64,000 nucleotides of DNA, from NCBI GenBank assembly GCA_048013815.1, contig CM106586.1, positions 11,718,001 to 11,782,000 of the forward strand, read 5' to 3'. The DNA is from Setoptus koraiensis (lineage: Eukaryota > Animalia > Arthropoda). The notes below the pieces were generated by a model. The model was not told the DNA's origin. It saw only the letters and a list, made by a program, of their open reading frames with translations, and ran no database searches. A program made the position numbers and the translations under genes. Each line of letters starts with the position of its first letter. Position 1 is the first letter of the stretch. Shown piece by piece: positions 5,412 through 25,818 of this stretch.

Positions 5412-5603
5412 ATGGGTGGTATAAATTTATTTGGCGAGCAAAAAAACGACGAAAGAATAGCGTGCTACTCAGAAACGATCACACCGACTGATTGTGGCTG
5501 CTTAACTCATATGATCAAGTACATCATGTATATCACGATGGGGGCGAACTTTTTGTGTTACACGGCGTTATTTTCTATCATTCTGATTAAGGCTCTAAGA
5601 TGA
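5412..5603 (+). CDS. Small single-TM ORF, type A (63 aa)
   Basis: ACGATGG start, PTDCGC motif, C-terminal TM (GANFLCYTALFSIILIKALR); frame, start and stop conserved with the diverged paralog at 8268. Confidence 0.5.
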   Translation: MGGINLFGEQKNDERIACYSETITPTDCGCLTHMIKYIMYITMGANFLCYTALFSIILIKALR

Positions 5604-6522
5604 GTGAATGTATTGACGAGGCAACGCTCTCAACTTTGATCATAGGACTATTTTATATCGGGTGAATCAATGATTGGCGTATCCGAATAACATCAGAAAA
5701 CCACTATGAATAACCACTATGATGTTCTAATAAGGTAGAGAGTTATTCAAGTATGCATGTGGCATGACCACATGATATGTTGATAAAATAAAATTTTTCT
5801 AATAAAAATGCTTACATGTATCATGACCAAATTAAGTTCCATTATTTCTTGATTGATGGAAACATATATTTTGAACGACAGGCTTCACTGAAAGATACGT
5901 AATGTCTCTAACAATTGGCATTAACATTACTTTAGTCGTGGATATAGTTTCAATCGAGGCAAGAGAAATCAGACCAAAGAGCTTCCCATGTCGGACTTGA
6001 ACTCACAAGTCAGTCAGTTCGTTGTCAGTTTGTGCTGTGACGATCATTATGACGTCACTATGTCAAAATAAAAGACTAACTTCGAGGCATCAGGTAAGTC
6101 AGACGATCTCCATCTACTAGTTGGATGATAACCTTAGTTCAATCAGTATTAACAGCCCCATGAGTTCAGACGCACATCAAGTACTTTATTAATCTGTATA
6201 TCAACGATTGAAATTAGTGAATTAATATCCGAGTAGGTTGATCAGGATTGCATTCTCATCCTCATCAGCTGAATGAAATTATAAAAGATGACATGCAAAT
6301 CGGCTGCTTCTATTACGCCCGAGCTCGTGCATGAAAGTAGAAGAGGAAACTGAATGAGACTTTGACACACAACCATTCTAACTTTCATTTCTTACATTTG
6401 ACTTGAAATTGAGGCGAATATCCCGCACAAATCACAATTGTTTGGTCAGGATCCATCGAATGAATGATATTTTTTCTATGGTGATTGAAGGAATAGTTAT
6501 TATATATTGAAATTATAGAGCC

Positions 6523-6942
6523 ATGTATCCCCCGAGATGCATCGAATCAGAATACTGGAGACAGTATCCTCTTTTATACAGAAATTATTCAATACTTGTA
6601 GATCCTTTTAATAGATTCAAGGAAAAAATGCTGTCCGTAGTGTCTGGATGTGATCGTCAATTGAATCAATGTCTTGAAGATTCCCTAAACCTGGATTTTG
6701 ACACTTTCGATGTTCCATCGTCTTGGTTTGGAAATTATGCATTTATCATGAGGAAAATGAACGAGAGTAATTGCTCCTCGCATTGCAGCACGCACTGGAT
6801 CATGATTGCATTGGGTATGATCTTCTTCTTTATTGGTATAGCGATGATCTTTGTGGTTTCAAAAAATATAGGCAAACGTGGAAAAAAACAAGTTGAAATT
6901 GCGACTAGAAACGTTCCCACTCGTTTCCAGTTCTTGGGGTAG
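6523..6942 (+). CDS. Small Cys-containing single-TM protein, type B (139 aa)
   Basis: GCCATG start, NCSSHCSTHW motif, TM, basic tail, AATAAA at ~7055; intact paralog at 25819-26238. Confidence 0.65.
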   Translation: MYPPRCIESEYWRQYPLLYRNYSILVDPFNRFKEKMLSVVSGCDRQLNQCLEDSLNLDFDTFDVPSSWFGNYAFIMRKMNESNCSSHCSTHWIMIALGMIFFFIGIAMIFVVSKNIGKRGKKQVEIATRNVPTRFQFLG

Positions 6943-7151
6943 TAGCAGCAATAATTTTGGAGAAAAATCAGTTCGAAGCTCTATCAAGACTTGAAGCAAT
7001 GTATGAATGTCAACCATGAGATCAACTCGATCGAAACTCTTTGTCTCTGCATAGAATAAAACGTAACCACCTTAATTTTTTGAATACTCTTGGTGTGCTA
7101 GCTCATTCATCATAGTGACAGATAGAGCTAACTTGATTATCGAGCAGATCC

Positions 7152-7345
7152 ATGTATGTTCGAAAATATCTCGGGAAAATGAACGAAAGTAATTGCTCCT
7201 CGCATTGCAGAACGCACTGGATCATGATTGCAGTGGGTATGGTCTTCTCTTCATTGGTATGGCGATGATCTCTGTGGTTTCAACCTATATAGGCAAACGT
7301 GAAAAAAAACGAGGTGAAACCACTCGTTTCCCGTTCTTTAAGTAG
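7152..7345 (+). pseudogene. 5'-truncated, frameshifted tandem duplicate of the type B gene
   Basis: Matches the C-terminal half and 3' UTR of 6523-6942; 1-bp deletion near 7250 (TTCTCTTCATT vs TTCCTCTTCATT in copy 2) gives a stop at 7266-7268. Confidence 0.65.
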
Positions 7346-7442
7346 TAGCAGCTACAATTTTGAAGAAAAATCATCAGTTCGAAGCTCTTTAAGACTTGAA
7401 GCAATATATGAATGTCAACCATGAGATCAACTCGATTGAAAC

Positions 7443-7499
7443 TCCTCTCTCTCTATCTCTCTTGCTCTCTCTCTCTCTCTTCTCTCTCTCTCCTCTCTT
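7443..7499. repeat. Imperfect (CT)n microsatellite (counterpart at ~26761-26790)
   Basis: Read directly. Confidence 0.8.
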
Positions 7500-8267
7500 G
7501 CGTAGAATAAAACGTAACCACCTTAACTTTTTGGAACTACCCTTGGTGTGCTAGATCATTCATCATAGTGACAGATAGAGATAATTTATTATCAAAGTCC
7601 ATGTATTAGCCGACAAAGAAAAAAAAACAAAGGACAATGAGCACTGAACTAAAGTGACACGCCGATCCAGAAAAATGCTGTATCTTGATGCCACTTGTTC
7701 GAGCATGTTGTCAAGAGACCTTGCGATGTGATAGTTCAAACATGAAGAAATGGGTCATTGTGACTCAAACACACGAGTGGAATCGGTGAACTCGTATCAG
7801 AGTGAGTTGGTTAGAATCGCAATTGCACTCCCATCAGCTTTATCGGGATAGAACAGATAAATGTAAAATGCATGCAGTGGTAATGCAAATCTACAGTTTC
7901 TATTATATCAGTGCTCGCGCATGAAAAAAGAAGAGAGACTTTGACACACAACCATTTTAACTTTCAACTGGTGTATTGCAGAACACTTACGTCACGCGCT
8001 CAAGTCTATCTGCAACAAACAATTCGAGATTACATTTTTCGCTTCATCAGGCTTCCTAGTTGCTATAGCAACTTTCACAACACAGATGGACAGAAACTCA
8101 ACATCGCTTCCAAATTGCTTGTATCATCCATCGATGCAACAGAAAATTCAACTCTTCTATCTCCCAGAAATTATCAGACACAACAAAAGCACGAGGGACA
8201 ATATCGGAGTTATTAATTGAGTCATCACCAGTCTAACATACAATCAAGCTGTCGCCTTGCATACACC

Positions 8268-9705: not shown

Positions 9706-10640
9706 AGAAAAAAATCGTCAGTTCGAAGCTCTTTCGAGACTGTATATAAATGAGCCAATATAAATGTCAATTACGAGATCAACTCGATTGAAACTCTTCG
9801 TCTTTGCACAGAATAAACCTTATTCATCTTAACTTTTGGAACACCCGTAGTGTGCTAAACGCAGATTGACACATACTGATGCATCAATAACCGTGCACTC
9901 CAGTCAACCTACAACAAACGATTCGAGATTTTATTTCTCGCGTCATTTCTGATCTAAGATCCGAACTTTTCCAGTGATACATGCGAAAAAAATACATCTA
10001 TCTAGCTTTGCATTTATCTGTTGATCTGGCGCTTGATTTTTGCCGACATAATGAGCCTTGGCTGCAATTTTCTATTTGATTTAACAGAGGTCGATGTGAG
10101 AAAAGATCCCTGATTCTTTAGATCCAACGGAAAATGCACTGAAAACACTGAGGTGTCTCGATAAATTTTACGTTTTTTCTCATCTTTTTCTTGTTAATTT
10201 GTTTTTCGATTGCTCATTCGATCTCACGCACGAAAGATGCGTGCACAAAAAGCGACCTCGAGCGGTTTTTCCCTGAACTGCGGCTGAAGGTATCGGCAGA
10301 TTTCCACACGGTATATCGTCTGCAATGCTTATCACATTGGAATCGATGTATTCAAGTCAATGAATCGTATACTACTATTATTGTGATGCGCGGCGCCTGG
10401 CGAGGTAAGTAGAATTCTGTCGATCATGTTCCCAAAATCCGATATCATCTAAATAGAGATACTAGGCAGAACGGCAGTGGTTGGAGCTAGCGGGACATTC
10501 ACTGACATTCGACTTTTAAAATCAGATTCATACTGATATGCTAAATCATGTTGTTTCCATCAAAAACCTTGTAGAGAGGTTCACCGGCAAAAACAAATAA
10601 GAAATTTTTCATTTATTGGTAACGTACGTTTCGATCGGTT

Positions 10641-11738
10641 ATGAGTGAAAAGAAACATCGAGTCTTTATAGATAGTGAGCCAACAAGTGCCACAGACAAA
10701 GTGAAATGGAACGCATTTACAAGCATTCACTCTAAAAATAGCGTCAAAGACCTCATTCGTTTATGTCACCAACAAAAAAATGGCCATTCTATTTTACAAA
10801 AACCAGACAGCAGAGGCCTCTTTCCGATTCATTGGGCCTCAATAAACAATCGACCTGACATGATTGAATACATGATCTTGCATAAAATTCCAAGGGATCT
10901 CGCCTGCCGTGACGATAGCCTGCATGGAGCCCGACCATTGCACTTAGCCGCTCTCAATGGATCCATTGAAGCTGCTTCATCGTTATTATTGAGTGGCCAG
11001 GTCAACAAAGACACGGATACCATGGCCAAGAGCATAATATCTATAATTGATAGTCTTGATTCAGTTGGCCAGACAGCACTCATGCGATGCGCCATTAGTA
11101 GAAGTAGTAGCAGCGATTTATGCCCTGATTTTCTCACAGGCAGGAACACCTGGTCTCTTGGAGCAAGGCCCTCTCAAATGGCGTTGTATCTCATGGTGAT
11201 GGGAGCAGATTGGCGAATCGTTGACATTCGAACAGGCTTCAACTTGATGCACTTAGCCGTCATCAACGATTGCCCAGATATAGTCCATTTGTTGTTACCG
11301 ACAGCCACGACATTGAATAGGAGATTATTCAGATCAGCAAAATCGGTGAAATCAGCAAAGTCGGCAAAGTCTGCAAAGTCGACAAAGTCTGCAAAGTCTG
11401 CAAAGTCTGCAAAGTCTGCAAAGTCGGCAAAGTCGGCAAGGTCGACAAAGTCGGCGAAATTAATGAAATTGACCAACACTCCCAGTCCGCAAATGAAATC
11501 ACGAAAGACAATACCGAAGAAATCGGTGAAGAGATCGAAGTCATTGAGAAAGTTTGTTACATTGGTTGAGCACAAGTCGTTGCCGGATACACGACCGCCA
11601 CATTTGCAACCTGGCATCAATCTAGAAGGCCAAGAATCAACAGGAACGAACTATTACACTGAGATCGCACCCAAGAATGTCAAGTCAATATCTCAGTATG
11701 AGTTAATGCGTCAAAAAAAAACACTGTCCCCTAATTAA
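10641..11738 (+). CDS. Chimeric ORF: ZDHHC ankyrin N-terminus fused in frame to the KSA-repeat tail (365 aa)
   Basis: First ~219 aa match 477-1132; sequence then switches to the equivalent of 3730 onward after a 3-nt insert (ACC, 11297-11299). Expression unknown. Confidence 0.75.
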   Translation: MSEKKHRVFIDSEPTSATDKVKWNAFTSIHSKNSVKDLIRLCHQQKNGHSILQKPDSRGLFPIHWASINNRPDMIEYMILHKIPRDLACRDDSLHGARPLHLAALNGSIEAASSLLLSGQVNKDTDTMAKSIISIIDSLDSVGQTALMRCAISRSSSSDLCPDFLTGRNTWSLGARPSQMALYLMVMGADWRIVDIRTGFNLMHLAVINDCPDIVHLLLPTATTLNRRLFRSAKSVKSAKSAKSAKSTKSAKSAKSAKSAKSAKSARSTKSAKLMKLTNTPSPQMKSRKTIPKKSVKRSKSLRKFVTLVEHKSLPDTRPPHLQPGINLEGQESTGTNYYTEIAPKNVKSISQYELMRQKKTLSPN

Positions 11739-12285
11739 CACGTAAACAGAGAATGTGAATATCAGTGTGACACGATGATGTAACATCTTATCAAGACTGT
11801 CTATCACATGTCCGTAATTTTGTCATTCAACAGCAGCCGAGCCATAGAGAATAGGGTAATGGAGGTGTGGGGCCATCAGTTGGTGGTGTCCAGACTAACT
11901 TGCTTCCAACAAATATCGGTTGTAAGATATAAGTGAAAGAAAAAAAGTGCCACGAATCGGCACTCGTTTTCTGTTCTGACGACCACGATCATTAGATAGT
12001 AGGGAGGTTGCGAACGTAGATCTTCATATTTTTGAGGAGAAATGTCACGATATCGGTTACAATATTAGTCACACTTTTTTCTTTTTCTTTTGTTTTCAAG
12101 AGATCTGGAAGACTGGGGCAGAACTAGGCAGTAGCAAATTAACAGCACTGACCTAAGATCTCCTCGCCTCAGTCCACTGACTGAGAGGTCTGTTGTACAA
12201 ATTCACTTATTTATCCAGTACAATGAAGCCAGAATAGATAAAATACAACTTTATGAATGGGCAGAAGGCATTGAATACTCATGCT

Positions 12286-12813
12286 TAGGGTAGGGCAAAT
12301 CGGTTCCGAGCCGAACTATTCCTGTGCATGGCAAAAACCCCAAGAATTTTCTAGCGAGTCATTCTCATCATAAGGATGATTTTGAGACGTATTTGTGGTC
12401 ACCGAAAAACCGAAATTCAACTCATTTTCCTCATAATCACCGATTTTCACCAACTTGCACATAGGGACCGAAACACGGGTGGTTTTCATAGAAAAGAATA
12501 GAAATTTAGCCCAAATTATAAAGAAAAGCTGCCCTGTTGGGGTTTCCGAGAGTCGGTTGCTGGGCAATTGATCACTGATCACTTGTGATATTTATTGACT
12601 TCGGTCAGCATAACAAAGTCGCGCCGATATTACGGATATTACTCTATCAGAAAACGCAACAAAACCATCGATTCTCGACGCACCCTGCACTCACTGTATA
12701 TGGTGTTTCAAAAGTATCGAGACCCCAAAAAACGAAAAAACCGAGAAAATGCTATATTTGCTCCCATAAGAACCGATTTTGGTTGATTTTAGTGACCGAT
12801 TTGCCCTACCCTA
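12286..12813. mobile_element. Non-autonomous hAT-type MITE, 528 bp
   Basis: Perfect 19-bp TIR TAGGGTAGGGCAAATCGGT; 8-bp TSD CTCATGCT (12278-12285, 12814-12821); single CTCATGCT at the empty site 4728-4735. Confidence 0.9.
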
Positions 12814-13817
12814 CTCATGCTGAAAGTATGGAATTGTGCAAGATGACATGCTCAAACCGAAAATGGCAAAACAAAAAACGAAAAATGAATCATCCAAGAT
12901 AGTGACCGTTCAAAAACTACCAAAATTTCCAACTCTCTTTCAATTTTATGAATAAATAGATATCTACCTTTATGACAAGATCGATTGTGCCAATCGATAA
13001 TCAAAAGCACATCAATACATGCTCTAATCTGGTTCGATCCGCGTCTCTATTTTCAAAAAGCAATCAAGTATATAGTCTGGTTGAGGTGGATGGAATTCGT
13101 GTTGTCGACAAGGCAGCAAAATTATTGATAAATAATAAAGAAGTCATGAACCTTTTGAATTTAGTCTCTTTTTCTGGGTTACGGTCGTTTCAGAGACGTA
13201 AGTTTCAGCGAATTACACTTCGGAGACGTATATTTCAGAGAACGTCTTTTTCTGGAGCGATATATTTTTCACTCAACCTCTATTGATCTCTCTATATATC
13301 GGAGCTGTTAATATCTTTTTTGTCGTACATGTGGGATCGATAGAAATAAAGTTAAGCGCAGAACTGCTTTGATCGGACTTTGATTAGTTCAGACCAACCA
13401 CTCTCATCAACTAAATGGGGATAGAACCGATACATGTAACATGCATTCAGTGATAATGCGAACTGACAGCCTTTATTACAACTGTGCTCGTGCATGGAAG
13501 TAGAACAGAGACTTTGACACACAACCATTTTAACTTTCACCTGGTGTATTGCAGAACACTTACGTCACGCGCTCAAGTCCATCTGCAACAAACAATTCGA
13601 GATTTCACATTCACTTCATCAGGCTTCATTATTAATTTGGTGACTTTTACACCACCGACGAGTAAAGAATTGACGTCTCTTGCAAGTTGCTTGTATCATC
13701 AGTTGCAACAAAAAATCATCCCTCCTATCTACTGAAAACAGCCGGATACAGCAATAGCGCCCAGGACAATACCAAAGTTATTAATCGAGTCATCTGCCAG
13801 TTTAGGTAGAGTCAAGG

Positions 13818-14325
13818 TGTGATGCCTGAGCGTGTCACGGAACAGAATCGTAGCAGAGACGAGGAATTGAATAGCGAGCAGAGATGGAAGCGGATATTAT
13901 TATATCAATTATTTGAGGACTTAAATGTACTAATTAACTAAATCTGCCCGACAGGAATTACGAGTCCTGGGGCCTCTATCTATTACTGTATTTTATTACT
14001 GTTATTGCTGTGAAATTACTACTGTTTTATGCAGAGAACGAGAGAACGCAAGTGTGTATATCAAAATGAGTTCGGTCCTATTTATATGGTTTGACCACGC
14101 TGCATGAAAACGTGGTCTAGATTGGTGTGAGTTCCATATCCGTCGGCACAAACAAAGAACAGGGTCTTCACTATATTTACATCGATGGACATCATGATAG
14201 ATCATTGTTACATCCAGATTTAATGCAACTCTTTAAAGTCTCAAACAGTAAGGAGAGACGCACATGGGTCGGCACATGTGCATAGTACTGTAGATTATGT
14301 GCGGGCACAGTGCACGGGCATCACA
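13818..14325 (-). repeat. 3' LTR (508 bp)
   Basis: Ends TGTGATGCC/GGCATCACA (9-bp inverted termini); minus-strand AATAAA at 13992-13997; no difference from the 5' LTR seen by eye. Confidence 0.95.
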
Positions 14326-14340
14326 GTCCACCCTCTTGCA
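14326..14340 (-). other. Polypurine tract
   Basis: Minus strand GCAAGAGGGTGGAC directly precedes the 3' LTR. Confidence 0.6.
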
Positions 14341-14712
14341 ATTCTTGAGCTTGCGATAGAAATGCAACTTCTGTGCACTGTGCGGTGAAAAATACCTTGG
14401 GCTAAAACTCTCCGAAAAACCAGTGGTGAAAAAGGAGAGAAACCGTTGGTTATATCTTGCATGAAATGTCCGTTAGATTTGCAAATTTTGAATTTTCGCG
14501 CGGTGTGTCTCTAGAGCGCGTGTTGATTGTAATGTACACCGGTGGGTTCCGCAGTCCAAATCATTTATAACGGTTTTTCATGCAGTTCAAGTTAATACAT
14601 TCATCATTGGAGATATTGTCATTCCCTAATTATTATTCATCAGTTCATTTGAATCATTATTGTGGAACTTCATACATCGGATAACCATCATTATTAATCA
14701 ACTGCGTCCATC

Positions 14713-16812
14713 ATGGGGTATATTAGGAGACGTTTGGTTACGAATATTTTACGCCTTCGATATGCTAATTTAGGACGTCCTTCAATTAATGTGCTCGGTC
14801 CAGAGACATACGAATCCAAATATTTTCTGCTTAATGAGCCTGGAAAAGTATTAATATATTTTGGTCATCGTAAATCGACGAAACGTCCCTATGCCGTTAT
14901 TATCATCAAGAGTGACCATTGTGTAGATGAGAGACCTGTTGCCAAAGGATTTTTTATAGTCTACGTCGGAACTAATTACAATAACATCCAATCGGTCGAG
15001 GCAAAGCTCGTTTATAAGCACATTGGTGGAAAATGGGATTTTGACCGCAAAGGGATCATCAATTTAAAAGCACGTGAGGATGGCCTACATGACTACGGAG
15101 TATTGTTAGAATTCCTCACCAACATCGACATGGAAGAGTTGTATGATAGCTTTTGTGGTTCCTTCCATTTGGAATATATTGACATTAAGGAATATGGATT
15201 AGAGGGCTTTATTCCACCCTCTTGTGTCTCTATCAAACCAATGCGATTGGGATTTGACAAATCATATCATGACGGCAATGCTATACTCCGAGGAGAGAAG
15301 CCTTGTTTGGAGGGCGACAATAATAGCATCATTCTTCAGCATGATAATCATTGGTTCTATGGATTGACATGTATGAATACGTATAAGGGTGTTCGTGTCC
15401 ACACATTATCTATACTTATTGGACATAGAGGCTTCTTTCGGACCGAGGAGGAATTTAAAACTGTTATAGAGCTTTTCCAGAAGTGTCTATCTATTGAAGT
15501 CAACCGTGTTCTGGTGTCTCGTTGCGAGGAGAAGAGTGCGATTGGGGCCTGCGCTTCGGAGGCCATTCAATATATAGCTGCCTTAATAAAGGGAGAAATG
15601 GCTCCGCATGCCATCATTTTCTATCATTCGATCGATGCAGATATATACAAACTGAGATCTGATCCCATTTTCATCCTAGGGAAGGAAATGGTAAAATCGA
15701 TGGAGGAGATGAGTGACTTCTCGCAGTCCATCATTTCGAGTCAATCCCAGCCGATGGTGATGGACGATGATTTCCCAAATGAAGAGGGTATCCAGCCGGA
15801 AGAAGAAATAATTCAGCCAGCGGAGGACATCGCTGACACTGATGACCAACCTGGGATTGATGCCTCTTTTGAAGATATCTCCCAAAGTAGTAGCGTAGTG
15901 TTCCTCAGGATGGTGACAACTGTGTCAAGCCAATCGACTCAGCGTTCAGCTAGATGGGAAGAGGACTTTCTGGAAGCTGTTCAAGATAATATTATACACC
16001 ATAAATTCTTCAGTTTCCCCAAAATTCGCCTCAGTCCCCGCAGTCAAATTCAACTGGATCTAAGTACAGATGATATCACGAAGATTTTGGATGATTACTC
16101 TGAGGCTTTCTATCAACGTATTGGCGAGGAAGTTAGGTTTGTTGCGAGTTATGAAACGCGTATTGAGGATGCACGTGACATAACTGAAATGGTTTCGCCA
16201 GCTCGCTTTGTCGGATTAATGTTCTGTGGTGAGGAATTTGTGACCGTCTTAATCGATAAAGCTCATGACGAATACATCAGCTTTGCAGCAGGAAATTTGG
16301 TGAAACGTTCTTCAGATTTGAGGGAGAATTTGGAGAAAGTTGCGACAGCATATTTTCCAGCGCTGAGTGGATTCAAGCATATTATGGTTCCAAATTTATG
16401 TTTGAATCATATGAATTGCAGCCTCATTCACGCCTTAGTATCGCTCACCGTCATATCAGACTACATGACTCATTACCCCCGTTTGCCACACGCCATCATC
16501 TATCCGGCACCTCTAGTGCGTCATATGGCGTATTATCTCACAGTTGCGCGTATTTGCGCCAATAATGAAGCAAATCGAGCTTCAACCGGTCCACCATTAC
16601 GGAATCCCATAATACAAATTCCGGACACGGAAACGAAGGTAGTGGCTTTGAATTCCTGCCCATTCTGCCGAAAGAGAGGCAACATGAAAGGGTTAGCGGG
16701 TGTGTTCAAACACATTGATATGGCCCACGCAGGCCAAGCGTCAAAAGCAGCTAAAGCTCGGTACGAGAAGCGTCGAGTTAACATCATAGATCCGAGTAGT
16801 GATGAGGATTAG
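14713..16812 (+). CDS. Antisense accessory ORF of the retrotransposon (699 aa); possible Ulp1/papain-like repeats plus C2H2-like finger
   Basis: Long uninterrupted ATG ORF between pol and the 3' LTR on the opposite strand; CPFC-X14-H-X4-H at 16657-16728; no signal peptide or TM. Domain call is inference. Confidence 0.8.
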   Translation: MGYIRRRLVTNILRLRYANLGRPSINVLGPETYESKYFLLNEPGKVLIYFGHRKSTKRPYAVIIIKSDHCVDERPVAKGFFIVYVGTNYNNIQSVEAKLVYKHIGGKWDFDRKGIINLKAREDGLHDYGVLLEFLTNIDMEELYDSFCGSFHLEYIDIKEYGLEGFIPPSCVSIKPMRLGFDKSYHDGNAILRGEKPCLEGDNNSIILQHDNHWFYGLTCMNTYKGVRVHTLSILIGHRGFFRTEEEFKTVIELFQKCLSIEVNRVLVSRCEEKSAIGACASEAIQYIAALIKGEMAPHAIIFYHSIDADIYKLRSDPIFILGKEMVKSMEEMSDFSQSIISSQSQPMVMDDDFPNEEGIQPEEEIIQPAEDIADTDDQPGIDASFEDISQSSSVVFLRMVTTVSSQSTQRSARWEEDFLEAVQDNIIHHKFFSFPKIRLSPRSQIQLDLSTDDITKILDDYSEAFYQRIGEEVRFVASYETRIEDARDITEMVSPARFVGLMFCGEEFVTVLIDKAHDEYISFAAGNLVKRSSDLRENLEKVATAYFPALSGFKHIMVPNLCLNHMNCSLIHALVSLTVISDYMTHYPRLPHAIIYPAPLVRHMAYYLTVARICANNEANRASTGPPLRNPIIQIPDTETKVVALNSCPFCRKRGNMKGLAGVFKHIDMAHAGQASKAAKARYEKRRVNIIDPSSDED

Positions 16813-16830
16813 TGCCATGTCTAACATCAT

Positions 16831-16849
16831 ATTTATTACTTCAATAAAT
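16831..16849. terminator. Back-to-back polyadenylation signals between the convergent ORF3 and pol
   Basis: ATTTATT-ACTTC-AATAAAT: AATAAA on + at 16843-16848 and on - at 16832-16837, in the 49-bp gap between the two stops. Confidence 0.5.
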
Positions 16850-16861
16850 GACCGAGGTCAG

Positions 16862-19800
16862 TCAATCCGAATATCTAGGTGGTCTTCTTATTGTTCGCTT
16901 TGGACGAGTCGTAATGTTGTCGACAGGCATCGTAGGTGAATTATTGATGGCATCGCTTGTTGGTGCATTATTCAATGTCTCAATCGAAGTCAAGTGACTA
17001 TTTGGAGTCTGATGCGTAATTTGGTCATCAAGTGATGGATTTTCAGGGTTTCCCTCGGTAGAAGGGGACCTCCTGATGCTGTCCATTAACACATCGAGGA
17101 TACTCCGGTTATCTCCTGAGGTATCCGAAATTCTTGCATCGGAACTGCCGTGGGCGACGAGTGATTCAATTCTTGGACCGATTTCTTGACTAACCTTGTT
17201 TTGCATCAATTCACTCGATCGCGAATTCATTTGGCAATTCCCATCGGTAGGACTCAAGATAACAGGTGTGTCTACTTGTGCGTCGACAGGATTCTGTCGA
17301 TCTGCCATTAAAGGCGATTCGCATGCAAGTGAGACTAATTCCGGTACAAAAGAACTCGTGTTCGCAGTGTTGGACACCGATTCAGGTTCGACGTCTCGAG
17401 TTATTTGCATGGAATTGCTATTAGGAAATGTGTTATCTGAATTTCCTTCGACAGGTAAATTGATTACAGGTAAATTCGTCTGTGTACCGCAAGAAATCTG
17501 TTTATCAGTTATATTGCTCGATTCTGATGCATTTGAGTGTTGATGGACAGGTTGTATTATGGTGCCGTTAGGTTCTGTACTTATTTCACTTTGAATGTTG
17601 ACCTGCATGGAATCACCTGTTACAGGTGAGTTATAAGGATGAAATTGCATAGAGGGATTTATCAGAGAAGTGTTTATCATATTGTCGAGTGATCTGTTAT
17701 TTACTGCAGTATTATTAGAGTTAGCATTATTCAAGTCCGTTGATACTGGATCTAACGGTTGACTTGGAGTGTCATGCTGAATATCATTGATTCTTTGCAT
17801 AGAATCAGTGCTCAGTTGTGAGTTAGCATTGTTTTGGTCGACAGTTAATTGTTGAATTGGCAGTTCTGCCTGACTGTCGGTTGAGATTCGGTTATCTCTA
17901 GGGAGCGACCCTAATTGATGCATCGTATCTCTAATGTCCGCTGTTCCAGTGAGACCTCTTTGTGTCCCATACCACAAAGGGCAGTCGTCGACGTGGAAAG
18001 GGAGAGATGTTTGTCTAACAATGGGACTCTCAGAGTACCGATTAACATTAGTTAGTTCATCTGACCGGTTATTATTATTATTATCATTATTACTATTATT
18101 ATTATTAAGACCAAGTATACCTGTGGAGTCCGTATTTGGACATCGATTAACACGAGAGGTATATATGGTTGTACCTGTGGAGCCCACGTCTGAGCATCGA
18201 TTAGCACATGTGGTATGCGCTTGTATTGTACCTGTGGAGTCCGTAAGAGGACATCGATTAACACATGGGGTACGCGCTAAATTTTCATCTATGGAGCCCC
18301 CTGTGGGACATCGATTAGCATAGATGAGAGCAGGTTCATTGCTTGTGGAGCCCATAGACGGACGTCGATTAACACAAGAACGAACATCGCCATCAGTTGT
18401 GGTGCTCATTGAAGGAGATTGATTAACACGAAGATGAGTGACTTCACAAATGGAGTCTGTAGCGGGGCATCTGTTAGTATTTGTATGAGATACCTCATGA
18501 CAATTAGAGCCTACCGCGGGACATCGATTAGCATTTGTAAGATCATCATCTTCGTCATTACTTACCCACGGTGAAGTACGATACAAGTGTGTATTGAGAG
18601 CAGATAATTGTTGACTTACGGAGTCCTCAGGAGGACATCGATTATCATGAGTAACTTGTATCGATTCATTCACCGAATTCTCGCCTTCAGGCGAGGTCGC
18701 AGATAGTGTTGACCCTGAGCGTGTGTCAAGATGATTCAATGTCACAGGTACTACTATTTGACTCTGGATTGGAATCGGACTATCGGGAAGTGAGTTCAGA
18801 ATATCTTTGCCCCCGACCTCTGGTTCGTCTGCCTCTAGATCGATAACTTGGCCAGAGTCATGATCATTCATAGGTTTCGACAACAGATGGTGATTGAGGC
18901 GTCCGATCTCTTGAACTAAACCCTCCTCGAGTTCATCCTCATCTTCTCTAGAGAAATAAGGTTTTGCCTGTTCGAATGATATCCTTCTTTTAACAGTCTG
19001 GCTCAGGTCTGAGACAAGCAAGGCCTTAGGACTGTCCTTCTCTCCTATGAATTTAACAATAACAAAGGGGCCTTCCCATTTGTGAGCGAGCTTACGACAG
19101 ATCGTTGTTGGTACACGCTCGACTCTCACTAGGACTAGTTGTCCGATAGCATAGTTCTGTGGTTTACGCTTCTTGTCGTAATAGTATTTTTGGACAAGTT
19201 GCGCTTTATAAGTGTTGAACGCTGCTTCATGCCTGACCATATCACGCAGGTCTTTAATTAATGGTGCATCTATATCATTATCCAATTCGCCTGGTTGCCT
19301 CAGAGGGTTACGAGGTTTAACTCCGAATAACAATTCGTAAGGAGTGTATTTGGTCGATTGGTTGACTGTTGTATTATAATTAAATACGGCCCATTTAAGT
19401 TGTTGGTCCCAATCTTTTTGATGCCTGCTCACATAATTCTTGATTATTTTAACCAGAGTGGCATTAAACCTTTCGTCCATACCGTTACTTTGGGCGTGGT
19501 AGGTACACGTGTATGATGGCTGTATTTTGAGGGTGTTGAGCAATGTAGTATATTCTGCCGAAGTAAATTGCACCCCATTGTCGGTCACAATTTCTTTAGG
19601 ACAACCGTGTATGGCAAATATATCTTCTTTAAGGAAATTAATGATGTCGATAACTTCGGTTTTGGGTGTTGCTCTAGCGTAGCCGAAGCGACTAAAAGCA
19701 TCTATCGCTGTTATGATATATTTATTGCCCTTGTGTGATGTGGTGACTTTACCTACGATATCGACGTGAATTCTGTCAAATATGTTCGAGGTTACGATTG

Positions 19801-22531
19801 GTTGCAATAGGCCTACTTTGGGGCCTTTTGGTGTCTTGAGCCTCTGACAGACATCACACGTTTTGATATATTGTTCTATATAAGCATTCATACCGGGCCA
19901 ATAAAGATCGCGAAGACTTTCTTTAGTCTTTTTTACACCTTTATGTCCACCGATGATGAGATCGTCGTGAGCAAGTGTTAGGATCTTTTTCCTCATGCTT
20001 TTAGGTATAAACAGGCGATGTTTGGGATTTCCCTCGGTGGATTGGTCGATATAGTATAACTGATCATTAATAATAGTATAACGAGGTTCTAATCCCTTAT
20101 TAAGAGTCTCTTTGATGTAAGACATCTCTTCATCCCAATCGTTTTGAGGTATTTGTATGGAGCCCAGAGCTGCAACTGCATGTTGATGTCTAGCTAAGGT
20201 ATGTTTAGCCATTTGGTCAGCTTTATCATTTCCTTGATTATTTGAATGCCCCTTTATATGGATACACCTCAATTGTAGCTTAGTGGAGAGTTGAGCTAGT
20301 TCTTTAAATATAGCTTCGTTTATAATGGGATGGTTCTTGGAATCTTTCCAACCGTTAGCGATCCATTTCTCGAGTGATTTATTCAATGCATTTGCCGCGT
20401 ATCTACTATCAGTCATTATGACGATATTAGTAAGACCCTCTTTTAATGCAATCTTACATGCCTCAATGATGGCTCGGACTTCAGCGACTTGATTTGATGG
20501 TTTGTCATCATTTACCATGCCAGATGCGGCTAAATCAACATTGAAGGTAGGATAAACGGCCCAAGAAGCTCTGCAGTCGGGAGTGCCATTACCACTACAG
20601 GCGCCGTCTGTGAAGAAGATTTCTTCAGGTGGATCTGGATTCATGAACATCAAGCCGGAAATTGTATTGGGCTCCCTTATCACGAATTTAAGGTTTATAT
20701 CAGGAGGCAGCCGAATCATCAATCTTTCGACCCTGATTGGCAGTTCTTTAAGCTCCAATATCTTCACTAGGTTTTTGCAGGTAGTTACATAAGTAGTCTT
20801 GTCACATGGTAAATATACACCAAATTTCCTGTGAGCAAGAATGATAGCTAGTAATGTTTTCTCAATGTCTATGTAATTACATTCTGAAGCAGTCAGCACT
20901 TGACCTGCTCTTGAAATGAGCTCATGTCTCTCCGAAAAGCATGCAACTTCGATTGAGTTCTCCTTGGTGATGAGTTCCACCAATTTAGGCTCATCAGACG
21001 AGGGTATTCTTTGAGAAGTCGAGCTTTCCAACCTGAGTCGTATTTCCGTTAATGCCTTAGCATGTTCGTCGGTCCATTCAAACAGCACATTGTCTTTTGT
21101 TAAGTCACGCAACGGTTGGGCCAGTTGGGTAAAGCTCTTAATAAATCTGGCGTAGTAATTTAACGTTCCCAAGATGATTTGGATATCTGTTTTGGATCCA
21201 GGTTTGATTAAATAGATCGGGTCTGTTTTGCCCTTGACAGGTGCGATACTATTATGCTCAATTTGAAATCCTAAGAACTCTACTCTAGACTGAAAGAATT
21301 TGCATTTCGATTTCTTGAGCTTAACGTTATGTTGTTGACATTTATCAAGCACCCATCTAAGACGGTTATGATGTTCTTCCGGGGTTGGGGCAAATACAAG
21401 AATATCGTCAATGTATATAACACAGTATTTGTATATCCCTGCTTCAAATATATTATTCATTGTCCTTTGATATACTGCCGGTGAATTAGTTAGACCGAAT
21501 GGGGCAACTTTGTACTGATATAACCCATGTGGTGTAAGAAATGCGGTCTTGTGCCTGTCGTGCCTAGCTAACGGTATTTGGAAGAAACCTTCCGTGCAAT
21601 CGAGTGCGGAGAAATATTGAGATCCATGAAGACAGAGGAATAAGTCTTCGGCTCTTGGCAATGGATATGTATCTCTGATGGTTATGCGATTGATTGGAAT
21701 GTAATTAATAACCATTCTTTTGTCTCCAGTTTTCTTAGGTACCAGTCTTGCGTTGGAGGCGAAGTTGGAGCGGGAGTGTTCAATAATATTTGAAGCTAAC
21801 AAGCGATCAACTTGTCTCTTCATTTCGATAATATCTTCCGGTTTGTGACGTTTGAGACGTGCCTTTGGGGCGGCGTCTGATATTAAATCGATCACCATGG
21901 GTTCGCAATTTATGAGAGAGCTAATCTTCTCGGCAAATACATCCGGATACTCATTAAGTATGGAATGCACAACTTGGTTTTGCTTTATTGATGTTTGATC
22001 CCTCTTATTGATGCAGGATAGTGACACCGCCGATTGGAGTGTAATTGGTGATTCATGGCCAACTTGTTTGTTTTCTCTCTTCACTACTAAGTTTCCTCCT
22101 GCATTAATTATGTCGAATTTGAGCTTTTTAATGTCGGGGTTTCCCATTATCATATCGTGGCTCAAAAGATCTGTGCAATTGTCGACTATAAATGCTTCAA
22201 CTTCAACGGGAGCCATTTTAATAACGGATGAAGATATGTAGAGTTTTGTTGAACGGTTAACTTCGAAACGGGTGTTGTCTGCTGTACAGATATCTAAAGA
22301 GACTCTGGTTGTCGCAGGTGAATTCACTAACATAATTAAACCATCGGCAGGTATGAATGTCGCCGTTGCACCTGTATCCACTACGGCGGATATTTCTAAC
22401 GATTCGATTCTCAGCTTGGTTATTAATAGTTTAGAATTGGTGTCGAGACTGGAGATTATATAATCGGGCACATGGTCGCCTCTTATTCCTTGCACCCTTT
22501 GGCATTTAAATTGTCTGGGTTGGAAGGACAA
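16862..22531 (-). CDS. pol: Pol polyprotein: protease, RT, degenerate RNase H, second RNase H1, integrase with GPF module and long tail
   Basis: VVDTGAT (PR), YIDD at 21404-21415 (RT), TDGAC...AEVRA...TDS...KGH...NDKAD (RNase H1), HHCC and D,D-35-E cores, WEGPF. The track start is TTG, so it is probably made as Gag-Pol by frameshift. Confidence 0.95.
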   Translation of the reverse strand: MSFQPRQFKCQRVQGIRGDHVPDYIISSLDTNSKLLITKLRIESLEISAVVDTGATATFIPADGLIMLVNSPATTRVSLDICTADNTRFEVNRSTKLYISSSVIKMAPVEVEAFIVDNCTDLLSHDMIMGNPDIKKLKFDIINAGGNLVVKRENKQVGHESPITLQSAVSLSCINKRDQTSIKQNQVVHSILNEYPDVFAEKISSLINCEPMVIDLISDAAPKARLKRHKPEDIIEMKRQVDRLLASNIIEHSRSNFASNARLVPKKTGDKRMVINYIPINRITIRDTYPLPRAEDLFLCLHGSQYFSALDCTEGFFQIPLARHDRHKTAFLTPHGLYQYKVAPFGLTNSPAVYQRTMNNIFEAGIYKYCVIYIDDILVFAPTPEEHHNRLRWVLDKCQQHNVKLKKSKCKFFQSRVEFLGFQIEHNSIAPVKGKTDPIYLIKPGSKTDIQIILGTLNYYARFIKSFTQLAQPLRDLTKDNVLFEWTDEHAKALTEIRLRLESSTSQRIPSSDEPKLVELITKENSIEVACFSERHELISRAGQVLTASECNYIDIEKTLLAIILAHRKFGVYLPCDKTTYVTTCKNLVKILELKELPIRVERLMIRLPPDINLKFVIREPNTISGLMFMNPDPPEEIFFTDGACSGNGTPDCRASWAVYPTFNVDLAASGMVNDDKPSNQVAEVRAIIEACKIALKEGLTNIVIMTDSRYAANALNKSLEKWIANGWKDSKNHPIINEAIFKELAQLSTKLQLRCIHIKGHSNNQGNDKADQMAKHTLARHQHAVAALGSIQIPQNDWDEEMSYIKETLNKGLEPRYTIINDQLYYIDQSTEGNPKHRLFIPKSMRKKILTLAHDDLIIGGHKGVKKTKESLRDLYWPGMNAYIEQYIKTCDVCQRLKTPKGPKVGLLQPIVTSNIFDRIHVDIVGKVTTSHKGNKYIITAIDAFSRFGYARATPKTEVIDIINFLKEDIFAIHGCPKEIVTDNGVQFTSAEYTTLLNTLKIQPSYTCTYHAQSNGMDERFNATLVKIIKNYVSRHQKDWDQQLKWAVFNYNTTVNQSTKYTPYELLFGVKPRNPLRQPGELDNDIDAPLIKDLRDMVRHEAAFNTYKAQLVQKYYYDKKRKPQNYAIGQLVLVRVERVPTTICRKLAHKWEGPFVIVKFIGEKDSPKALLVSDLSQTVKRRISFEQAKPYFSREDEDELEEGLVQEIGRLNHHLLSKPMNDHDSGQVIDLEADEPEVGGKDILNSLPDSPIPIQSQIVVPVTLNHLDTRSGSTLSATSPEGENSVNESIQVTHDNRCPPEDSVSQQLSALNTHLYRTSPWVSNDEDDDLTNANRCPAVGSNCHEVSHTNTNRCPATDSICEVTHLRVNQSPSMSTTTDGDVRSCVNRRPSMGSTSNEPALIYANRCPTGGSIDENLARTPCVNRCPLTDSTGTIQAHTTCANRCSDVGSTGTTIYTSRVNRCPNTDSTGILGLNNNNSNNDNNNNNRSDELTNVNRYSESPIVRQTSLPFHVDDCPLWYGTQRGLTGTADIRDTMHQLGSLPRDNRISTDSQAELPIQQLTVDQNNANSQLSTDSMQRINDIQHDTPSQPLDPVSTDLNNANSNNTAVNNRSLDNMINTSLINPSMQFHPYNSPVTGDSMQVNIQSEISTEPNGTIIQPVHQHSNASESSNITDKQISCGTQTNLPVINLPVEGNSDNTFPNSNSMQITRDVEPESVSNTANTSSFVPELVSLACESPLMADRQNPVDAQVDTPVILSPTDGNCQMNSRSSELMQNKVSQEIGPRIESLVAHGSSDARISDTSGDNRSILDVLMDSIRRSPSTEGNPENPSLDDQITHQTPNSHLTSIETLNNAPTSDAINNSPTMPVDNITTRPKRTIRRPPRYSD
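18100..18540 (-). repeat. Degenerate coding repeat, ~8 units of 17-19 aa with core (A/V/T)NRCP
   Basis: Read from the Pol translation; ACATCGATTA-like cores every ~51-57 bp on the + strand. Confidence 0.8.
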
Positions 22532-23550
22532 TCTTTATTGAAATGGTAAGCTCCGCAGAATTTACAAGGGTAAGGTACTATCCCGTTAACTTTCTCGTAA
22601 TCTTTGCGGCACTTCTCGATGATCGTATCATCAACTCGTGGTGGTAGAAGTTTCGGTCGTGCTTGATCGAACCTACGTTTATCAAAAGAGTTATTGTAAG
22701 GCCGTTTGTAGTTGTTAGGCTTCCATTTACCGTCACGATGGAACTTTTTAGGGGGTCTGTCTTCTCCATATGTGCGTTTTTCAGGTGCTTTGAACGCAAC
22801 AGCTGCCAGTTCCGTTTTCTTGGTTAGTTCTTCTATAGTCGTGTTTTGCTTCTTCATTGCATTTTGAGTTTCCTCATGGATTTTAGCCAGCATTTTGACA
22901 ATAGTACTTGTATCAACAATAGAATTTTCTGAGAGATTCGGTTCAATTTCATCTTCGAACGTCTTGAGAACGGCACGTAATTCTTTCAGGGTTCCAATCT
23001 TACTTATGTTGGAGATATAATTGAGGTTAAGCTTCGTTTTAGAGGGCAAACTAGCGTATAGATGCTCTATTAGATCACGTTGATCTTTCAAGCTTTCCCC
23101 ATGATCTGGGTTGGCCTTTTTGTAGAGCACAATATAATCATCTAGATATGAAGATAGACTCTTTTCCCCTGGCTCATAATTCATTTGATGTAACTTCTTG
23201 ATAAAATCAAGACGAGAGTGAGAAGGGTAATATCTCTCTTTAAACTGTTTCTCGACAGTTGACCAGTCCCCTGCGGCGCTCTCTTTCTTCAGATTGGTCT
23301 TGAGCCAACCAAGAGCTGATTTCTCTAAGGCGTTGTAGAAATAATGACAACGATTCTTATCAGAGCATCGGTGAGTAACCTTCTTGAACTTGGAAAGAAA
23401 AGCACGTGGGTCTTCGTGTGAGGCTCCAGTGAATTCTGGTAGATCACCGTGTACAGCATGATTCTGAGAAAGGGTCTCGGATATTTCTCGAATATATGAA
23501 GTAGCGATATTTGAAATATCTTCTGAAACAGAGTCTCTGCTGGAAGTCAT
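22483..23550 (-). CDS. gag: Gag (355 aa)
   Basis: First ORF after the PBS; capsid-like helical region (LPEFTG...FLSKF); C-terminal knuckle CKFCGAYHFNKDC (CX2CX3HX4C). Confidence 0.85.
   Translation of the reverse strand: MTSSRDSVSEDISNIATSYIREISETLSQNHAVHGDLPEFTGASHEDPRAFLSKFKKVTHRCSDKNRCHYFYNALEKSALGWLKTNLKKESAAGDWSTVEKQFKERYYPSHSRLDFIKKLHQMNYEPGEKSLSSYLDDYIVLYKKANPDHGESLKDQRDLIEHLYASLPSKTKLNLNYISNISKIGTLKELRAVLKTFEDEIEPNLSENSIVDTSTIVKMLAKIHEETQNAMKKQNTTIEELTKKTELAAVAFKAPEKRTYGEDRPPKKFHRDGKWKPNNYKRPYNNSFDKRRFDQARPKLLPPRVDDTIIEKCRKDYEKVNGIVPYPCKFCGAYHFNKDCPSNPDNLNAKGCKE
22504..22510 (-). promoter_or_regulatory. -1 ribosomal frameshift heptamer U_UUA_AAU
   Basis: In the gag frame (GAC AAT TTA AAT) inside the 49-nt gag/pol overlap; pol is in the -1 frame; a GGGUGCA/UGUGCCC stem starts 6 nt downstream. 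Confidence 0.75.
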
Positions 23551-23645
23551 GATTCTATACGACTATCCTGTTGATTTGCAAGGATGGGCTATTTCCTCTT
23601 TTATTCTGTTCGTGGTAGATATTTTTCTAGTTTTACGACAGTGGC

Positions 23646-23663
23646 AACCACGCTCTGCTACCA
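23646..23663 (-). other. Primer binding site, initiator tRNA-Met
   Basis: TGGTAGCAGAGCGTGGTT, 2 nt inside the 5' LTR; complementary to the ...CTCTGCTACCA 3' end typical of metazoan tRNA-iMet. Confidence 0.85.
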
Positions 23664-23665
23664 AC

Positions 23666-24173
23666 TGTGATGCCTGAGCGTGTCACGGAACAGAATCGTA
23701 GCAGAGACGAGGAATTGAATAGCGAGCAGAGATGGAAGCGGATATTATTATATCAATTATTTGAGGACTTAAATGTACTAATTAACTAAATCTGCCCGAC
23801 AGGAATTACGAGTCCTGGGGCCTCTATCTATTACTGTATTTTATTACTGTTATTGCTGTGAAATTACTACTGTTTTATGCAGAGAACGAGAGAACGCAAG
23901 TGTGTATATCAAAATGAGTTCGGTCCTATTTATATGGTTTGACCACGCTGCATGAAAACGTGGTCTAGATTGGTGTGAGTTCCATATCCGTCGGCACAAA
24001 CAAAGAACAGGGTCTTCACTATATTTACATCGATGGACATCATGATAGATCATTGTTACATCCAGATTTAATGCAACTCTTTAAAGTCTCAAACAGTAAG
24101 GAGAGACGCACATGGGTCGGCACATGTGCATAGTACTGTAGATTATGTGCGGGCACAGTGCACGGGCATCACA
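23666..24173 (-). repeat. 5' LTR (508 bp)
   Basis: Same sequence as 13818-14325 at offset 9848; minus-strand TATAAA at ~23929-23934. Confidence 0.95.
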
Positions 24174-24197
24174 AAGGGTTCGCCTTGTGCGCTCACG

Positions 24198-24395
24198 ATG
24201 GGTGGTATAAATTTATTTGGCGAGCAAAAAAACGACGAAAGAATAGCGTGCTACTCAGAAACGATCACACCGACTGATTGTGGCTGCTTAACTCATATGA
24301 TCAAGTACATCATGTACATCACGATGGGGGCGAACTTTTTGTGTTACACGGCGTTGTTTTCTATCATTCTGAGGCTCTCATTCTTAAGTCTCTAA
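24198..24395 (+). CDS. Type A small TM ORF, copy 2, altered C-terminus
   Basis: Identical to 5412 through IIL, then RLSFLSL* because of a complex indel at ~24370-24390; the ATG lies 24 nt from the LTR edge. Confidence 0.45.
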   Translation: MGGINLFGEQKNDERIACYSETITPTDCGCLTHMIKYIMYITMGANFLCYTALFSIILRLSFLSL

Positions 24396-25368
24396 GATGA
24401 GTGAATGTATTGACAAGGCAACGCTCTCAACTATGATCATAGGACTATTTTCAATTAGATGAATTCAATGATTGGCATATCTGAATAACATCGGAAAACC
24501 ACTATGAATAATGGAGCTGATGTTCTAATTAGGTAGTGAATTATTCAAGTATGCATGTTGTCATGATATGTTGATAAAATTTAGGAGAGAAGTCAATCTA
24601 ATAAAAATGCTAACATGTATCATGACCAAATTTCCATCATTTCTTGATTGATGGAAACATATATTTCGAACGACAAGCTTCACTGAAAGATACGCAGTGT
24701 CTCTATGAATTGGCTTTAACATTACTTTTATCGTGTATATAGAGTCAATCGAGGCAAGGAAAATCAGACTAAAGAGCTCTCATGTCGGGCTTGAACTCAG
24801 TTAGTTCCGTCACGATCATTATGACGTCACTGTGTCAAAATAAAAGACTAACTTCGAGGCATCAGGTGAGTCAGACGATCTCCATCTACCAGTTGGATGA
24901 TAATCTTAGTTCAATCAAGATTAACAGCACCATGAATTTAGGCGTACATCAAGTACTTCATTAATCTGTATATCAATGATTGAAATTGGTGAATTCATAT
25001 CAGAGTAAGTTGGTCAGGATTGCATTCTCACTCTCATCAGCTGAATGAAATTATAAAAGATACATGCAAATCGGCTGCTTCTATTAAGTCCGAGCTCGTG
25101 CATGAAAGTAGAAGAGGAAACTGAATGAGACTTTGACACACAACCATTCTAACTTTCATTTCTTACATTTGACTTGAAATTGAGGCGAATATCAGAATTC
25201 TCGCATAAATAACAATTGTTTGGCCAGGATTTGTCGAATAATATTTTTGCATGGTAATTGACGGAATGGTTATGATTTATTGAAATTTCAGAAAATAGCA
25301 CACCTGTAAAACGTTCACACACAAAGACACACACACACACAGACTCATACACACACGGAGAGAGAGTC

Positions 25369-25731
25369 ATGTTCCCTCCAGTATGCTTCGAAAAGGAGGT
25401 GAATAGGAAAGATTTTCCAGCACCGTACGCTAGACCTGAGTTTAACCACGAAAAATGTTCGGGTCCCGTTGATGGTAAATGTTCTGTACTGCATGAAGAG
25501 ATGAAACCAGAGGAAAAATTTGATCGGATGGACGTCTTGCACGAATGTTACAATGAAGTTGTTCCGCTCGTGAGACGAGGGCAGGCAAAAGGGATTTTCA
25601 CAGAAATTAACAACTTCAATTGCAACTCGCATTGCAGCTCGAACTGGACCCTAGATGCATTGATTTTTTTCCTATTCTTTATTGGTATAGCGATGATCAT
25701 TCTTGTTTCAATGTTTTTGGACAAACCATAA
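25369..25731 (+). CDS. Type C-like small single-TM protein (120 aa)
   Basis: MFPPVC start, HEC..E.VPLV and NCNSHCS.NW motifs shared with 9268; middle part diverged; tail truncated by a recombination junction. Confidence 0.6.
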   Translation: MFPPVCFEKEVNRKDFPAPYARPEFNHEKCSGPVDGKCSVLHEEMKPEEKFDRMDVLHECYNEVVPLVRRGQAKGIFTEINNFNCNSHCSSNWTLDALIFFLFFIGIAMIILVSMFLDKP

Positions 25732-25818
25732 ATAACAATTGTTTGGTCAGGATCCGTCGAATAATATTTTTGCATGGTAATTGACGGAATGGTTATGATT
25801 TATTGAAATTTTAGAGCC

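Follow-up and report, generated by a model that had tools for sequence, protein, structure and literature searches.

We describe an accessory gene that an LTR (long terminal repeat) retrotransposon of the arthropod Setoptus koraiensis carries in antisense orientation. The DNA analysed, called the window below, is a stretch of 64,000 nucleotides from contig CM106586.1 of GenBank assembly GCA_048013815.1 (positions 11,718,001 to 11,782,000, forward strand), and all coordinates refer to it. The window contains a complete Ty3/gypsy-type element with two RNase H domains. An open reading frame (ORF) stands between pol and the 3′ LTR of this element, on the strand opposite to gag and pol. This antisense ORF is a real, element-borne, conserved accessory gene of a dual-RNase-H Ty3/gypsy-type lineage. 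Its product probably combines an active peptidase core of clan CE type (the N2 unit), a second clan CE fold near the C-terminus that would bind substrate, and a zinc finger, and its activity would be the removal of ubiquitin-like (UBL) modifiers at the element. We estimate the probability of this reading at roughly 55%.

The antisense gene and its relatives

The initial annotation of this DNA described a stop-free ORF with an ATG start, antisense to gag and pol, in the position of env and without a transmembrane segment. The coordinates of the ORF and the LTRs bear this out (Table 1). The ORF fills the region that separates pol from the LTR at 13818-14325. It is convergent with pol and does not overlap it, the two stop codons being separated by 49 bp. 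Because there is no overlap, the ORF is not the mirror of a coding region. The DNA has a GC content of about 40%, and an open frame of 700 codons is therefore not expected by chance. No stretch of the product reaches the strength of a transmembrane segment; the Kyte-Doolittle mean over 19 residues peaks at 1.35. We found no second copy of the ORF within the window, and the other two window ORFs of similar length (about 690 aa) are not paralogous to it.

Two further features of the annotation, an acidic linker and a terminal CX2CX14HX4H motif, are also present. The linker (aa 336-420) contains 22% D+E, 21% S+T and 4% K+R. A hydrophobic core followed by an acidic run, as in SUMO-interacting motifs (SIM-like), was found in the linkers of 7 of 16 family members, compared with 3.1 expected. 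The four residues of the finger, C649, C652, H667 and H672, are kept in all 18 relatives that reach that far, and the segment with finger and tail (aa 641-699) has 20% K+R. When the family profile was compared with the PDB, it matched a ZFY finger (E 0.006). Matches to zf-C2H2-type families in Pfam were weak (E 0.0075-0.09), occurred in few members and stayed below the gathering score.

A HMMER search of 1.84 billion cluster representatives returned 20 relatives of the protein at E ≤ 1e-3, and 11 of these are full-length (637-720 aa). Ten of the relatives were looked up; all ten are unnamed and derive solely from Logan assemblies of public sequencing runs. One relative was found with a word-index search. 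Scans of the JGI metagenomes and of IMG/VR found none.

Linkage to pol was examined on six contigs, each from a different sequencing run (L002 to L006 and the contig of P0126). On four of them (L002, L004, L005 and L006), the relative stands tail to tail with a pol that contains RVT_1, RNase_H and integrase domains, and gag lies beyond pol where the contig extends that far. The other two (L003 and P0126) have a convergent ORF that is cut off. The arrangement of L003 is repeated on a seventh contig, L009. Between the window and L002, pol is 54% and the antisense ORF 43% identical; between L004 and L006 the values are 64% and 45%. Between the two clades of the family, pol identity is 36-38% and ORF identity is 24-35%. 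These values fit a long co-descent of ORF and element in which the ORF would have evolved faster than pol. In the pair L003 and L009, 1 of 2022 bases differs in the antisense ORF and 27 of 2175 differ in the adjoining 3′ part of pol. Divergence as uneven as this could reflect recombination between copies. With a single ORF difference, the pair is uninformative on selection.

To assess selection, we compared the ORF of the window piece by piece with its closest copy, on contig L001. This copy is read in three frames, and the two frame changes are either real or assembly errors. The proportion of synonymous differences (pS) was saturated at 0.81-0.90. The proportion of nonsynonymous differences (pN) was lowest for the finger and tail, at 0.15, followed by 0.21 for aa 1-340 and 0.28 for the C-terminal fold; it was highest for the linker, at 0.41. 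Judged by this low pN against saturated pS, the protein is under purifying selection.

Signals for expression of the gene can be proposed from position. The 387 bp from the LTR to the ATG presumably hold the promoter and the 5′ untranslated region. The gap between the convergent stop codons contains one AATAAA hexamer on each strand, 25-31 nt past the stop codon of the gene that it would serve; the one for the antisense ORF is at 31 nt. The hexamer is a weak signal, with 127 occurrences in the window. The minus-strand AATAAA, directly after pol, would stand upstream of the 3′ LTR.

The protein itself might be irrelevant, with the antisense RNA regulating the element through double-stranded RNA, or with the ORF being a passenger that the element took up from its host. 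Retroelements can produce antisense transcripts with a regulatory effect of their own (PMC7264820), and the genes converge within 49 bp, so that their transcripts could overlap. However, the frame is open over 637-720 codons in at least six elements whose pols are only 36-64% identical, and synonymous change has run far ahead of amino-acid change. The protein also has invariant residues and confidently predicted folds, and no free-standing cellular relative was found among the 1.84e9 representatives. We therefore regard a role without the protein as very improbable.

Predicted folds and candidate active-site residues

AlphaFold2 was run with shallow alignments of 16-20 natural relatives. The model of aa 1-340 reached a predicted local distance difference test score (pLDDT) of 78.6 and a predicted TM-score (pTM) of 0.78. 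The model of aa 401-699 reached 86.5 and 0.84, respectively. When the C-terminal model was searched against the PDB with Foldseek, nearly all of the top 45 or so matches were clan CE peptidases. The best match was the I7L core protease of poxviruses (E 2.8e-4). NEDP1/Den1 was matched with a probability of 1.0 and a target-side TM-score (TMt) of 0.51, and further matches were SENP2, SENP3, SENP5, SENP7, yeast Ulp1, XopD and pS273R of African swine fever virus (ASFV). With the N-terminal model, every match with a probability above 0.7 belonged to clan CE. XopD was the best of them (E 2.7e-3, TMt 0.43), and the others included SENP7, SENP2, 5lnb, SseL and the YopJ-type proteins PopP2 and HopZ1a. 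The probabilities for XopD, SENP7, SENP2 and 5lnb were 0.94-1.0. Matches outside the clan (acetyl-CoA carboxylase, metallo-beta-lactamases) had probabilities of 0.1-0.4 and root-mean-square deviations of about 20 Å. A search of predicted viral structures returned Ulp1-like proteins of giant viruses with weak scores.

The predicted models thus support clan CE (Ulp1/SENP-type) folds in both halves of the protein, with modest statistical strength. Such a fold had first been called by eye as Ulp1/C48. The fold was returned for both halves by AlphaFold2 and Foldseek; at the sequence level, membership in Peptidase_C48 was not detected.

The N-terminal half is predicted to consist of two units, N1 and N2, whose strands and helices follow in the same order with an offset of about 154 aa. 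This suggests that the two units arose by internal duplication, which would fit the three similar segments listed in the initial annotation. In a profile-profile comparison among N1, N2 and the C-terminal fold, no sequence similarity was detected (probability under 2%).

Acyl-transferases of the YopJ type acetylate proteins of the host by means of a CE fold with the same triad, and PopP2, HopZ1a and Lem17 match the N-terminal model with probabilities of 0.77-0.91. They rank, however, under the matches to SENP proteins and XopD, with lower TM-scores, and no sequence similarity to them was found. An acyl-transferase of this kind is accordingly an alternative to which we give hardly any weight.

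Among 16 N-terminal sequences that share about 15% identity, His213, His238 and Cys280 are the only invariant residues; Arg270 is kept in 15 of the 16. In the AlphaFold2 model, His213 opens a strand, His238 comes after the next strand of the hairpin and Cys280 stands three residues before a helix. In the clade of the window, His213 is followed by Trp. Clan CE peptidases have the catalytic order His, third residue, Cys, and in many of them a Trp follows the His (PMC6759571). From alignment and secondary structure, we infer that His213, His238 and Cys280 are ordered and placed like the catalytic residues of CE peptidases. The N2 core is thus probably a working cysteine (iso)peptidase.

The C-terminal fold presents a different pattern. 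Position 498, that of the canonical His, is Arg in 17 of 20 members and His in 2. Asp515 is kept in all 20, and it stands 17 residues past position 498, which we take to be the His-to-Asp spacing of Ulp1/SENP enzymes. Position 569, just before a helix, is Tyr in 11 members, Cys in 3 and another residue in the rest. His573, Pro592, Asn528 and Glu520 are conserved instead, and the order His-Asp/Glu/Asn-Cys is absent. Because Arg occupies the His position and there is no conserved Cys, the C-terminal fold is probably a degenerate CE pseudo-protease that binds rather than cuts. The residues picked in the initial annotation were placed exactly (15349 is the start of the His213 codon, 15550 of Cys280 and 16417 of Cys569). 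As candidate catalytic residues, His213 and Cys280 gained from the alignment, whereas Cys569 and its His position did not.

Several points weigh against an active peptidase as proposed here. No sequence match to any CE family was found: Pfam returned none at E ≤ 0.1 with the whole protein, at E ≤ 10 with four pieces of it, or in any of the 20 members, and sequence and profile searches of the PDB returned zinc fingers only. The best Foldseek E-values are modest (2.8e-4 and 2.7e-3), with target-side TM-scores of 0.4-0.5. The N-terminal matches were obtained with the model of aa 1-340 as a whole and are not attributable to N1 or to N2 individually. The assignment of His213, His238 and Cys280 to a triad is based on their spacing and the predicted secondary structure rather than on superposition. 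The middle invariant residue is His238 and not Asp, Glu or Asn. No oxyanion Gln or Asn is conserved before Cys280, where the columns vary (column 274 has N in 5 sequences, D in 4, K in 3, G in 2, and others). Finally, the wider lineage can do without the gene, as sister elements carry unrelated third ORFs (see below).

Some of these points would also be explained if the protein were a non-catalytic scaffold or decoy. All of its CE-like units would then be pseudo-enzymes that bind a UBL or a host factor, and His213, His238 and Cys280 would be the ligands of a structural metal site. In favour of this, the canonical His and Cys are clearly gone from the C-terminal fold, an invariant His in the middle is atypical of CE triads and frequent in zinc sites, an oxyanion residue is not conserved, and some linkers have SIM-like motifs. 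On the other hand, the His at the start of a strand, the Cys before a helix, the CE order and, in the clade of the window, the Trp after the His resemble an active CE core (PMC6759571), and a His/His/Cys metal site would be left without a conserved fourth ligand in the alignment. We consider a purely binding protein unlikely and favour an active N2 core.

The host element and the rest of the window

As listed in Table 1, the element has LTRs, a target-site duplication, candidates for the primer-binding site and the polypurine tract, gag, and a pol with the order protease, reverse transcriptase, RNase H, extra RNase H and integrase. These features identify it as a dual-RNase-H element of the Ty3/gypsy type. 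The LTRs are 100% identical and end in TG..CA. Gag and pol overlap by 49 nt in different frames. All three frames, those of gag, pol and the antisense ORF, are open, and together with the identical LTRs this suggests that the element is young. A scan of the window for tRNA genes and Rfam families found none.

Table 1. Features of the window, the retrotransposon and the antisense gene (aa, amino acids; strand given where it applies).
Feature	Position	Strand	Remarks
Antisense accessory ORF	14713-16812	+	699 codons, ATG start, uninterrupted by stops
N1 unit, aa 1-150	14713-15162	+	folded alpha/beta; AlphaFold2 block with pLDDT 72-90
N2 unit, aa 185-335	15265-15717	+	candidate active CE-type core
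His213 codon	15349-15351	+	N2 unit
His238 codon	15424-15426	+	N2 unit
Cys280 codon	15550-15552	+	N2 unit
Acidic linker, aa 336-420	15718-15972	+	Ser/Gln-rich, varies across the family
C-terminal CE-fold domain, aa 421-640	15973-16632	+	canonical triad degenerate
Asp515 codon	16255-16257	+	C-terminal fold
His573 codon	16429-16431	+	C-terminal fold
C2H2-type zinc finger, aa 649-672	16657-16728	+	C649-x2-C652-x14-H667-x4-H672, then basic tail
Spacer from LTR to ATG of antisense ORF	14326-14712	+	387 bp
Gap between convergent stop codons	16813-16861		49 bp; AATAAA at 16843-16848 (+) and 16832-16837 (-)
Complete Ty3/gypsy-type LTR retrotransposon, dual RNase H	13818-24173	-	10,356 bp
3′ LTR (element orientation)	13818-14325	-	exact 508-nt match to 23666-24173
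5′ LTR (element orientation)	23666-24173	-	508 bp
Target-site duplication, left	13814-13817		AAGG
Target-site duplication, right	24174-24177		AAGG
Empty-site paralog	4951-6514		copy of the insertion locus without the element; AAGG once, at 5388-5391
Primer-binding-site candidate	23646-23663	-	begins TGG, two bases inside the 5′ LTR
Polypurine-tract candidate	14326-14340	-	abuts the 3′ LTR
gag	22483-23550	-	355 aa; weak Retrotrans_gag and Ty3_capsid matches
pol	16862-22531	-	1889 aa
pol, reverse transcriptase	21260-21742
pol, native RNase H	20708-21076
pol, extra RNase H	20198-20623		PF00075
pol, integrase	19370-20008
pol C-terminal tail, aa ~1201-1889	16865-18931	-	rich in S/N/T/D/P
Ankyrin-repeat DHHC palmitoyltransferase ORF	477-2549	+	intronless

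The insertion site is duplicated in the window. The segment 147-8366 is repeated at 10311-27640 in several pieces that are 80-99.6% identical, and the element lies in the second of the two copies. In the first, 4951-5391 (corresponding to 13386-13817) runs uninterrupted into 5388-6514 (corresponding to 24174-25287). This empty site has a single AAGG, and 13818-24173 is therefore a discrete insertion that made a 4-bp duplication and post-dates the segmental duplication.

Along pol, a weak Pfam match to an aspartic protease is followed by RVT_1 (E 1.3e-35), the native RNase H, the extra RNase_H (PF00075, E 5.6e-29) and the integrase (Integrase_H2C2, E 1.1e-18; rve, E 2.2e-14). The 81 nearest pols with PF00075 are 39-57% identical and are all unnamed proteins from metagenomes or read archives. 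Homology to these 81 relatives stops at about aa 1200. The remaining tail of about 690 aa has no Pfam match, and it is not common even to the closest pol, P0002, whose long tail is its own.

Two sister elements, with pols about 43-50% identical, carry a third ORF in sense orientation after pol. In L007 it encodes 509 aa (6225-7754, +) with a weak PHD match, and in L008 it encodes 424 aa (6295-7569, +). Both are unrelated to the antisense family. The 3′ end of the lineage is therefore a slot for varying cargo.

These features of pol also bear on whether the antisense product is a maturation protease that cuts the element's own Gag or the long tail of Pol. The CE proteases of adenoviruses, poxviruses and ASFV act in this way, and the same is presumed for the Ulp1-like domain of NeSL/Utopia, retrotransposons that carry Ulp1-like proteases (PMC4640811). 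The best Foldseek matches of the C-terminal model are to poxvirus I7L, with ASFV pS273R also listed, and the unusual, non-conserved tail of 690 aa would offer a substrate. Yet pol has an aspartic protease region of its own (a weak Pfam match), and the antisense gene is on the opposite strand and would be expressed separately. In addition, it is the I7L-like fold that lacks the canonical His and Cys, and the sister elements manage without the gene. A role in maturation is thus quite improbable.

Outside the element, the ankyrin-DHHC ORF has a sole close relative, an unnamed read-archive protein of 63% identity, and all other relatives are at most 34% identical. Such distant relatives indicate that the host lineage is poorly sampled. 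The gene is shortened in the second copy of the duplication, where ORF 10641-11738 matches its N-terminal part. The duplicated flank contains direct repeats of about 430 bp (26040-26900 and 6752-7454), which are 86-88% identical and include a (CT)n tract. An assembly gap of 500 N spans 27641-28140, and the ORFs that run across it (27491-28367, both strands) are artefacts. The ORFs 59710-61776 (-; 688 aa) and 3233-4168 (+; 311 aa) belong to no Pfam family and are unrelated to the antisense ORF. No other ORF in the window had a significant Pfam match; the best was to DUF6903, below the gathering score.

Proposed function and relation to known systems

If the N2 core is active, the gene might work as follows. 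The antisense ORF would be transcribed from the 387-bp spacer or from the adjacent LTR. The finger and the basic tail may direct the protein to the nucleus, to nucleic acid or to chromatin. The N-terminal core would cleave SUMO or another UBL conjugate on chromatin or on host factors at the element, and the degenerate C-terminal fold and, in some members, the SIM-like motif of the linker may help to hold the substrate. Deconjugation would favour expression of the element against host silencing, by analogy with the proposal for VANC/KIU. In the fullest form of this proposal, a lineage of LTR retrotransposons from little-sampled eukaryotes would encode an antisense, chromatin-directed enzyme for SUMO/UBL deconjugation, built from an active CE fold, a degenerate one that binds the substrate and a finger for targeting, that lifts host silencing. 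We put this forward as tentative and, taken as a whole, somewhat unlikely.

Compared with clan CE peptidases (Ulp1/SENP/NEDP1, XopD, I7L and pS273R; MEROPS C48 and relatives), the antisense protein shares the predicted fold in both halves, the His followed by Cys in the N-terminal half, and the Asp 17 residues after the His position in the C-terminal half. It differs from them in having no detectable sequence similarity, His238 as the middle residue and no conserved oxyanion Gln. Further differences are the Arg in place of His and the lack of a conserved Cys in the C-terminal fold, and the chaining of two, perhaps three, CE-like units to a C2H2 finger.

Protease-like domains of CE type are borne by several other mobile elements. 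The Ulp1-bearing KAONASHI/VANC (KIU) genes of Mutator-like elements have a reported role against the epigenetic silencing of their own family (PMC13317346), and Ulp1-like domains occur in Ginger1 transposases (PMC2836005) and in NeSL/Utopia non-LTR retrotransposons (PMC4640811). In Mutator, Ginger1 and NeSL/Utopia elements, Pfam identifies these domains as Peptidase_C48, and they stand in sense orientation beside a transposase or reverse transcriptase or in fusion with it. In contrast, the gene described here is a separate antisense gene of an LTR retrotransposon, and its domains lie under sequence detection. VANC/KIU comes closest as a precedent for the function, and the likeness is a functional analogy drawn from PMC13317346.

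The layout has its closest parallel in plant elements of the Tat/Retand group (Grande with gene23, RIRE2, Retand), which have antisense ORFs between pol and the 3′ LTR together with dual RNase H (PMC7264820, PMC4408406, PMC11963269). The ORF of the window has the same place and orientation, in a dual-RNase-H element. The plant products have a PMD or a Transposase_28 domain, or no recognisable domain at all (PMC4408406, PMC7264820, PMC11963269); Pfam matches to PMD or Transposase_28 (TRP28) were found neither in the antisense ORF nor in any relative. The pol of the window is not close to any named plant element: its nearest pols are unnamed and environmental, and the named plant proteins are 33-35% identical over about 40% of the query and are without the extra RNase H (PF00075). 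The framing by plant Tat elements in the initial annotation finds no support in these matches.

The oomycete Ty3/gypsy elements Archon and Chronos also have an added RNase H, and Archon is without a chromodomain; no additional ORF is mentioned for them (PMC5348765). The window element resembles both in its dual RNase H and Archon in having no chromodomain. It also carries the antisense ORF, and no named oomycete protein is among its pol relatives. The retrotransposon literature points to deltaretroviruses, in which the minus strand encodes a regulatory protein at the 3′ end and the 3′ LTR, or a site near it, drives its transcription (PMC7264820). This likeness is an analogy of layout, as the type of protein is unrelated. 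A literature search found no report of an Ulp1-like domain or of such an accessory gene in LTR retrotransposons.

It has been known for decades that LTR retrotransposons can carry additional antisense ORFs. Reviews still describe the products as similar to nothing else and as being of unknown function (PMC7264820, PMC11963269). The predicted models now give one such ORF a concrete, structure-based assignment, with tandem clan CE folds, one of which has an apparently intact pair of nucleophile and base, and a finger. This connects LTR retrotransposons with the DNA transposons and non-LTR elements, which have captured Ulp1-like domains repeatedly. Sequence searches of Pfam and the PDB do not detect the family; it is seen only in unannotated assemblies of read archives, and it thereby marks an unsampled group of hosts. 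The idea that antisense genes counter silencing gains a candidate molecule. If the gene does lift host silencing as proposed, it would have converged on a solution that plant Mutator elements reached with their Ulp1-bearing anti-silencing genes and some retroviruses with their antisense regulators.

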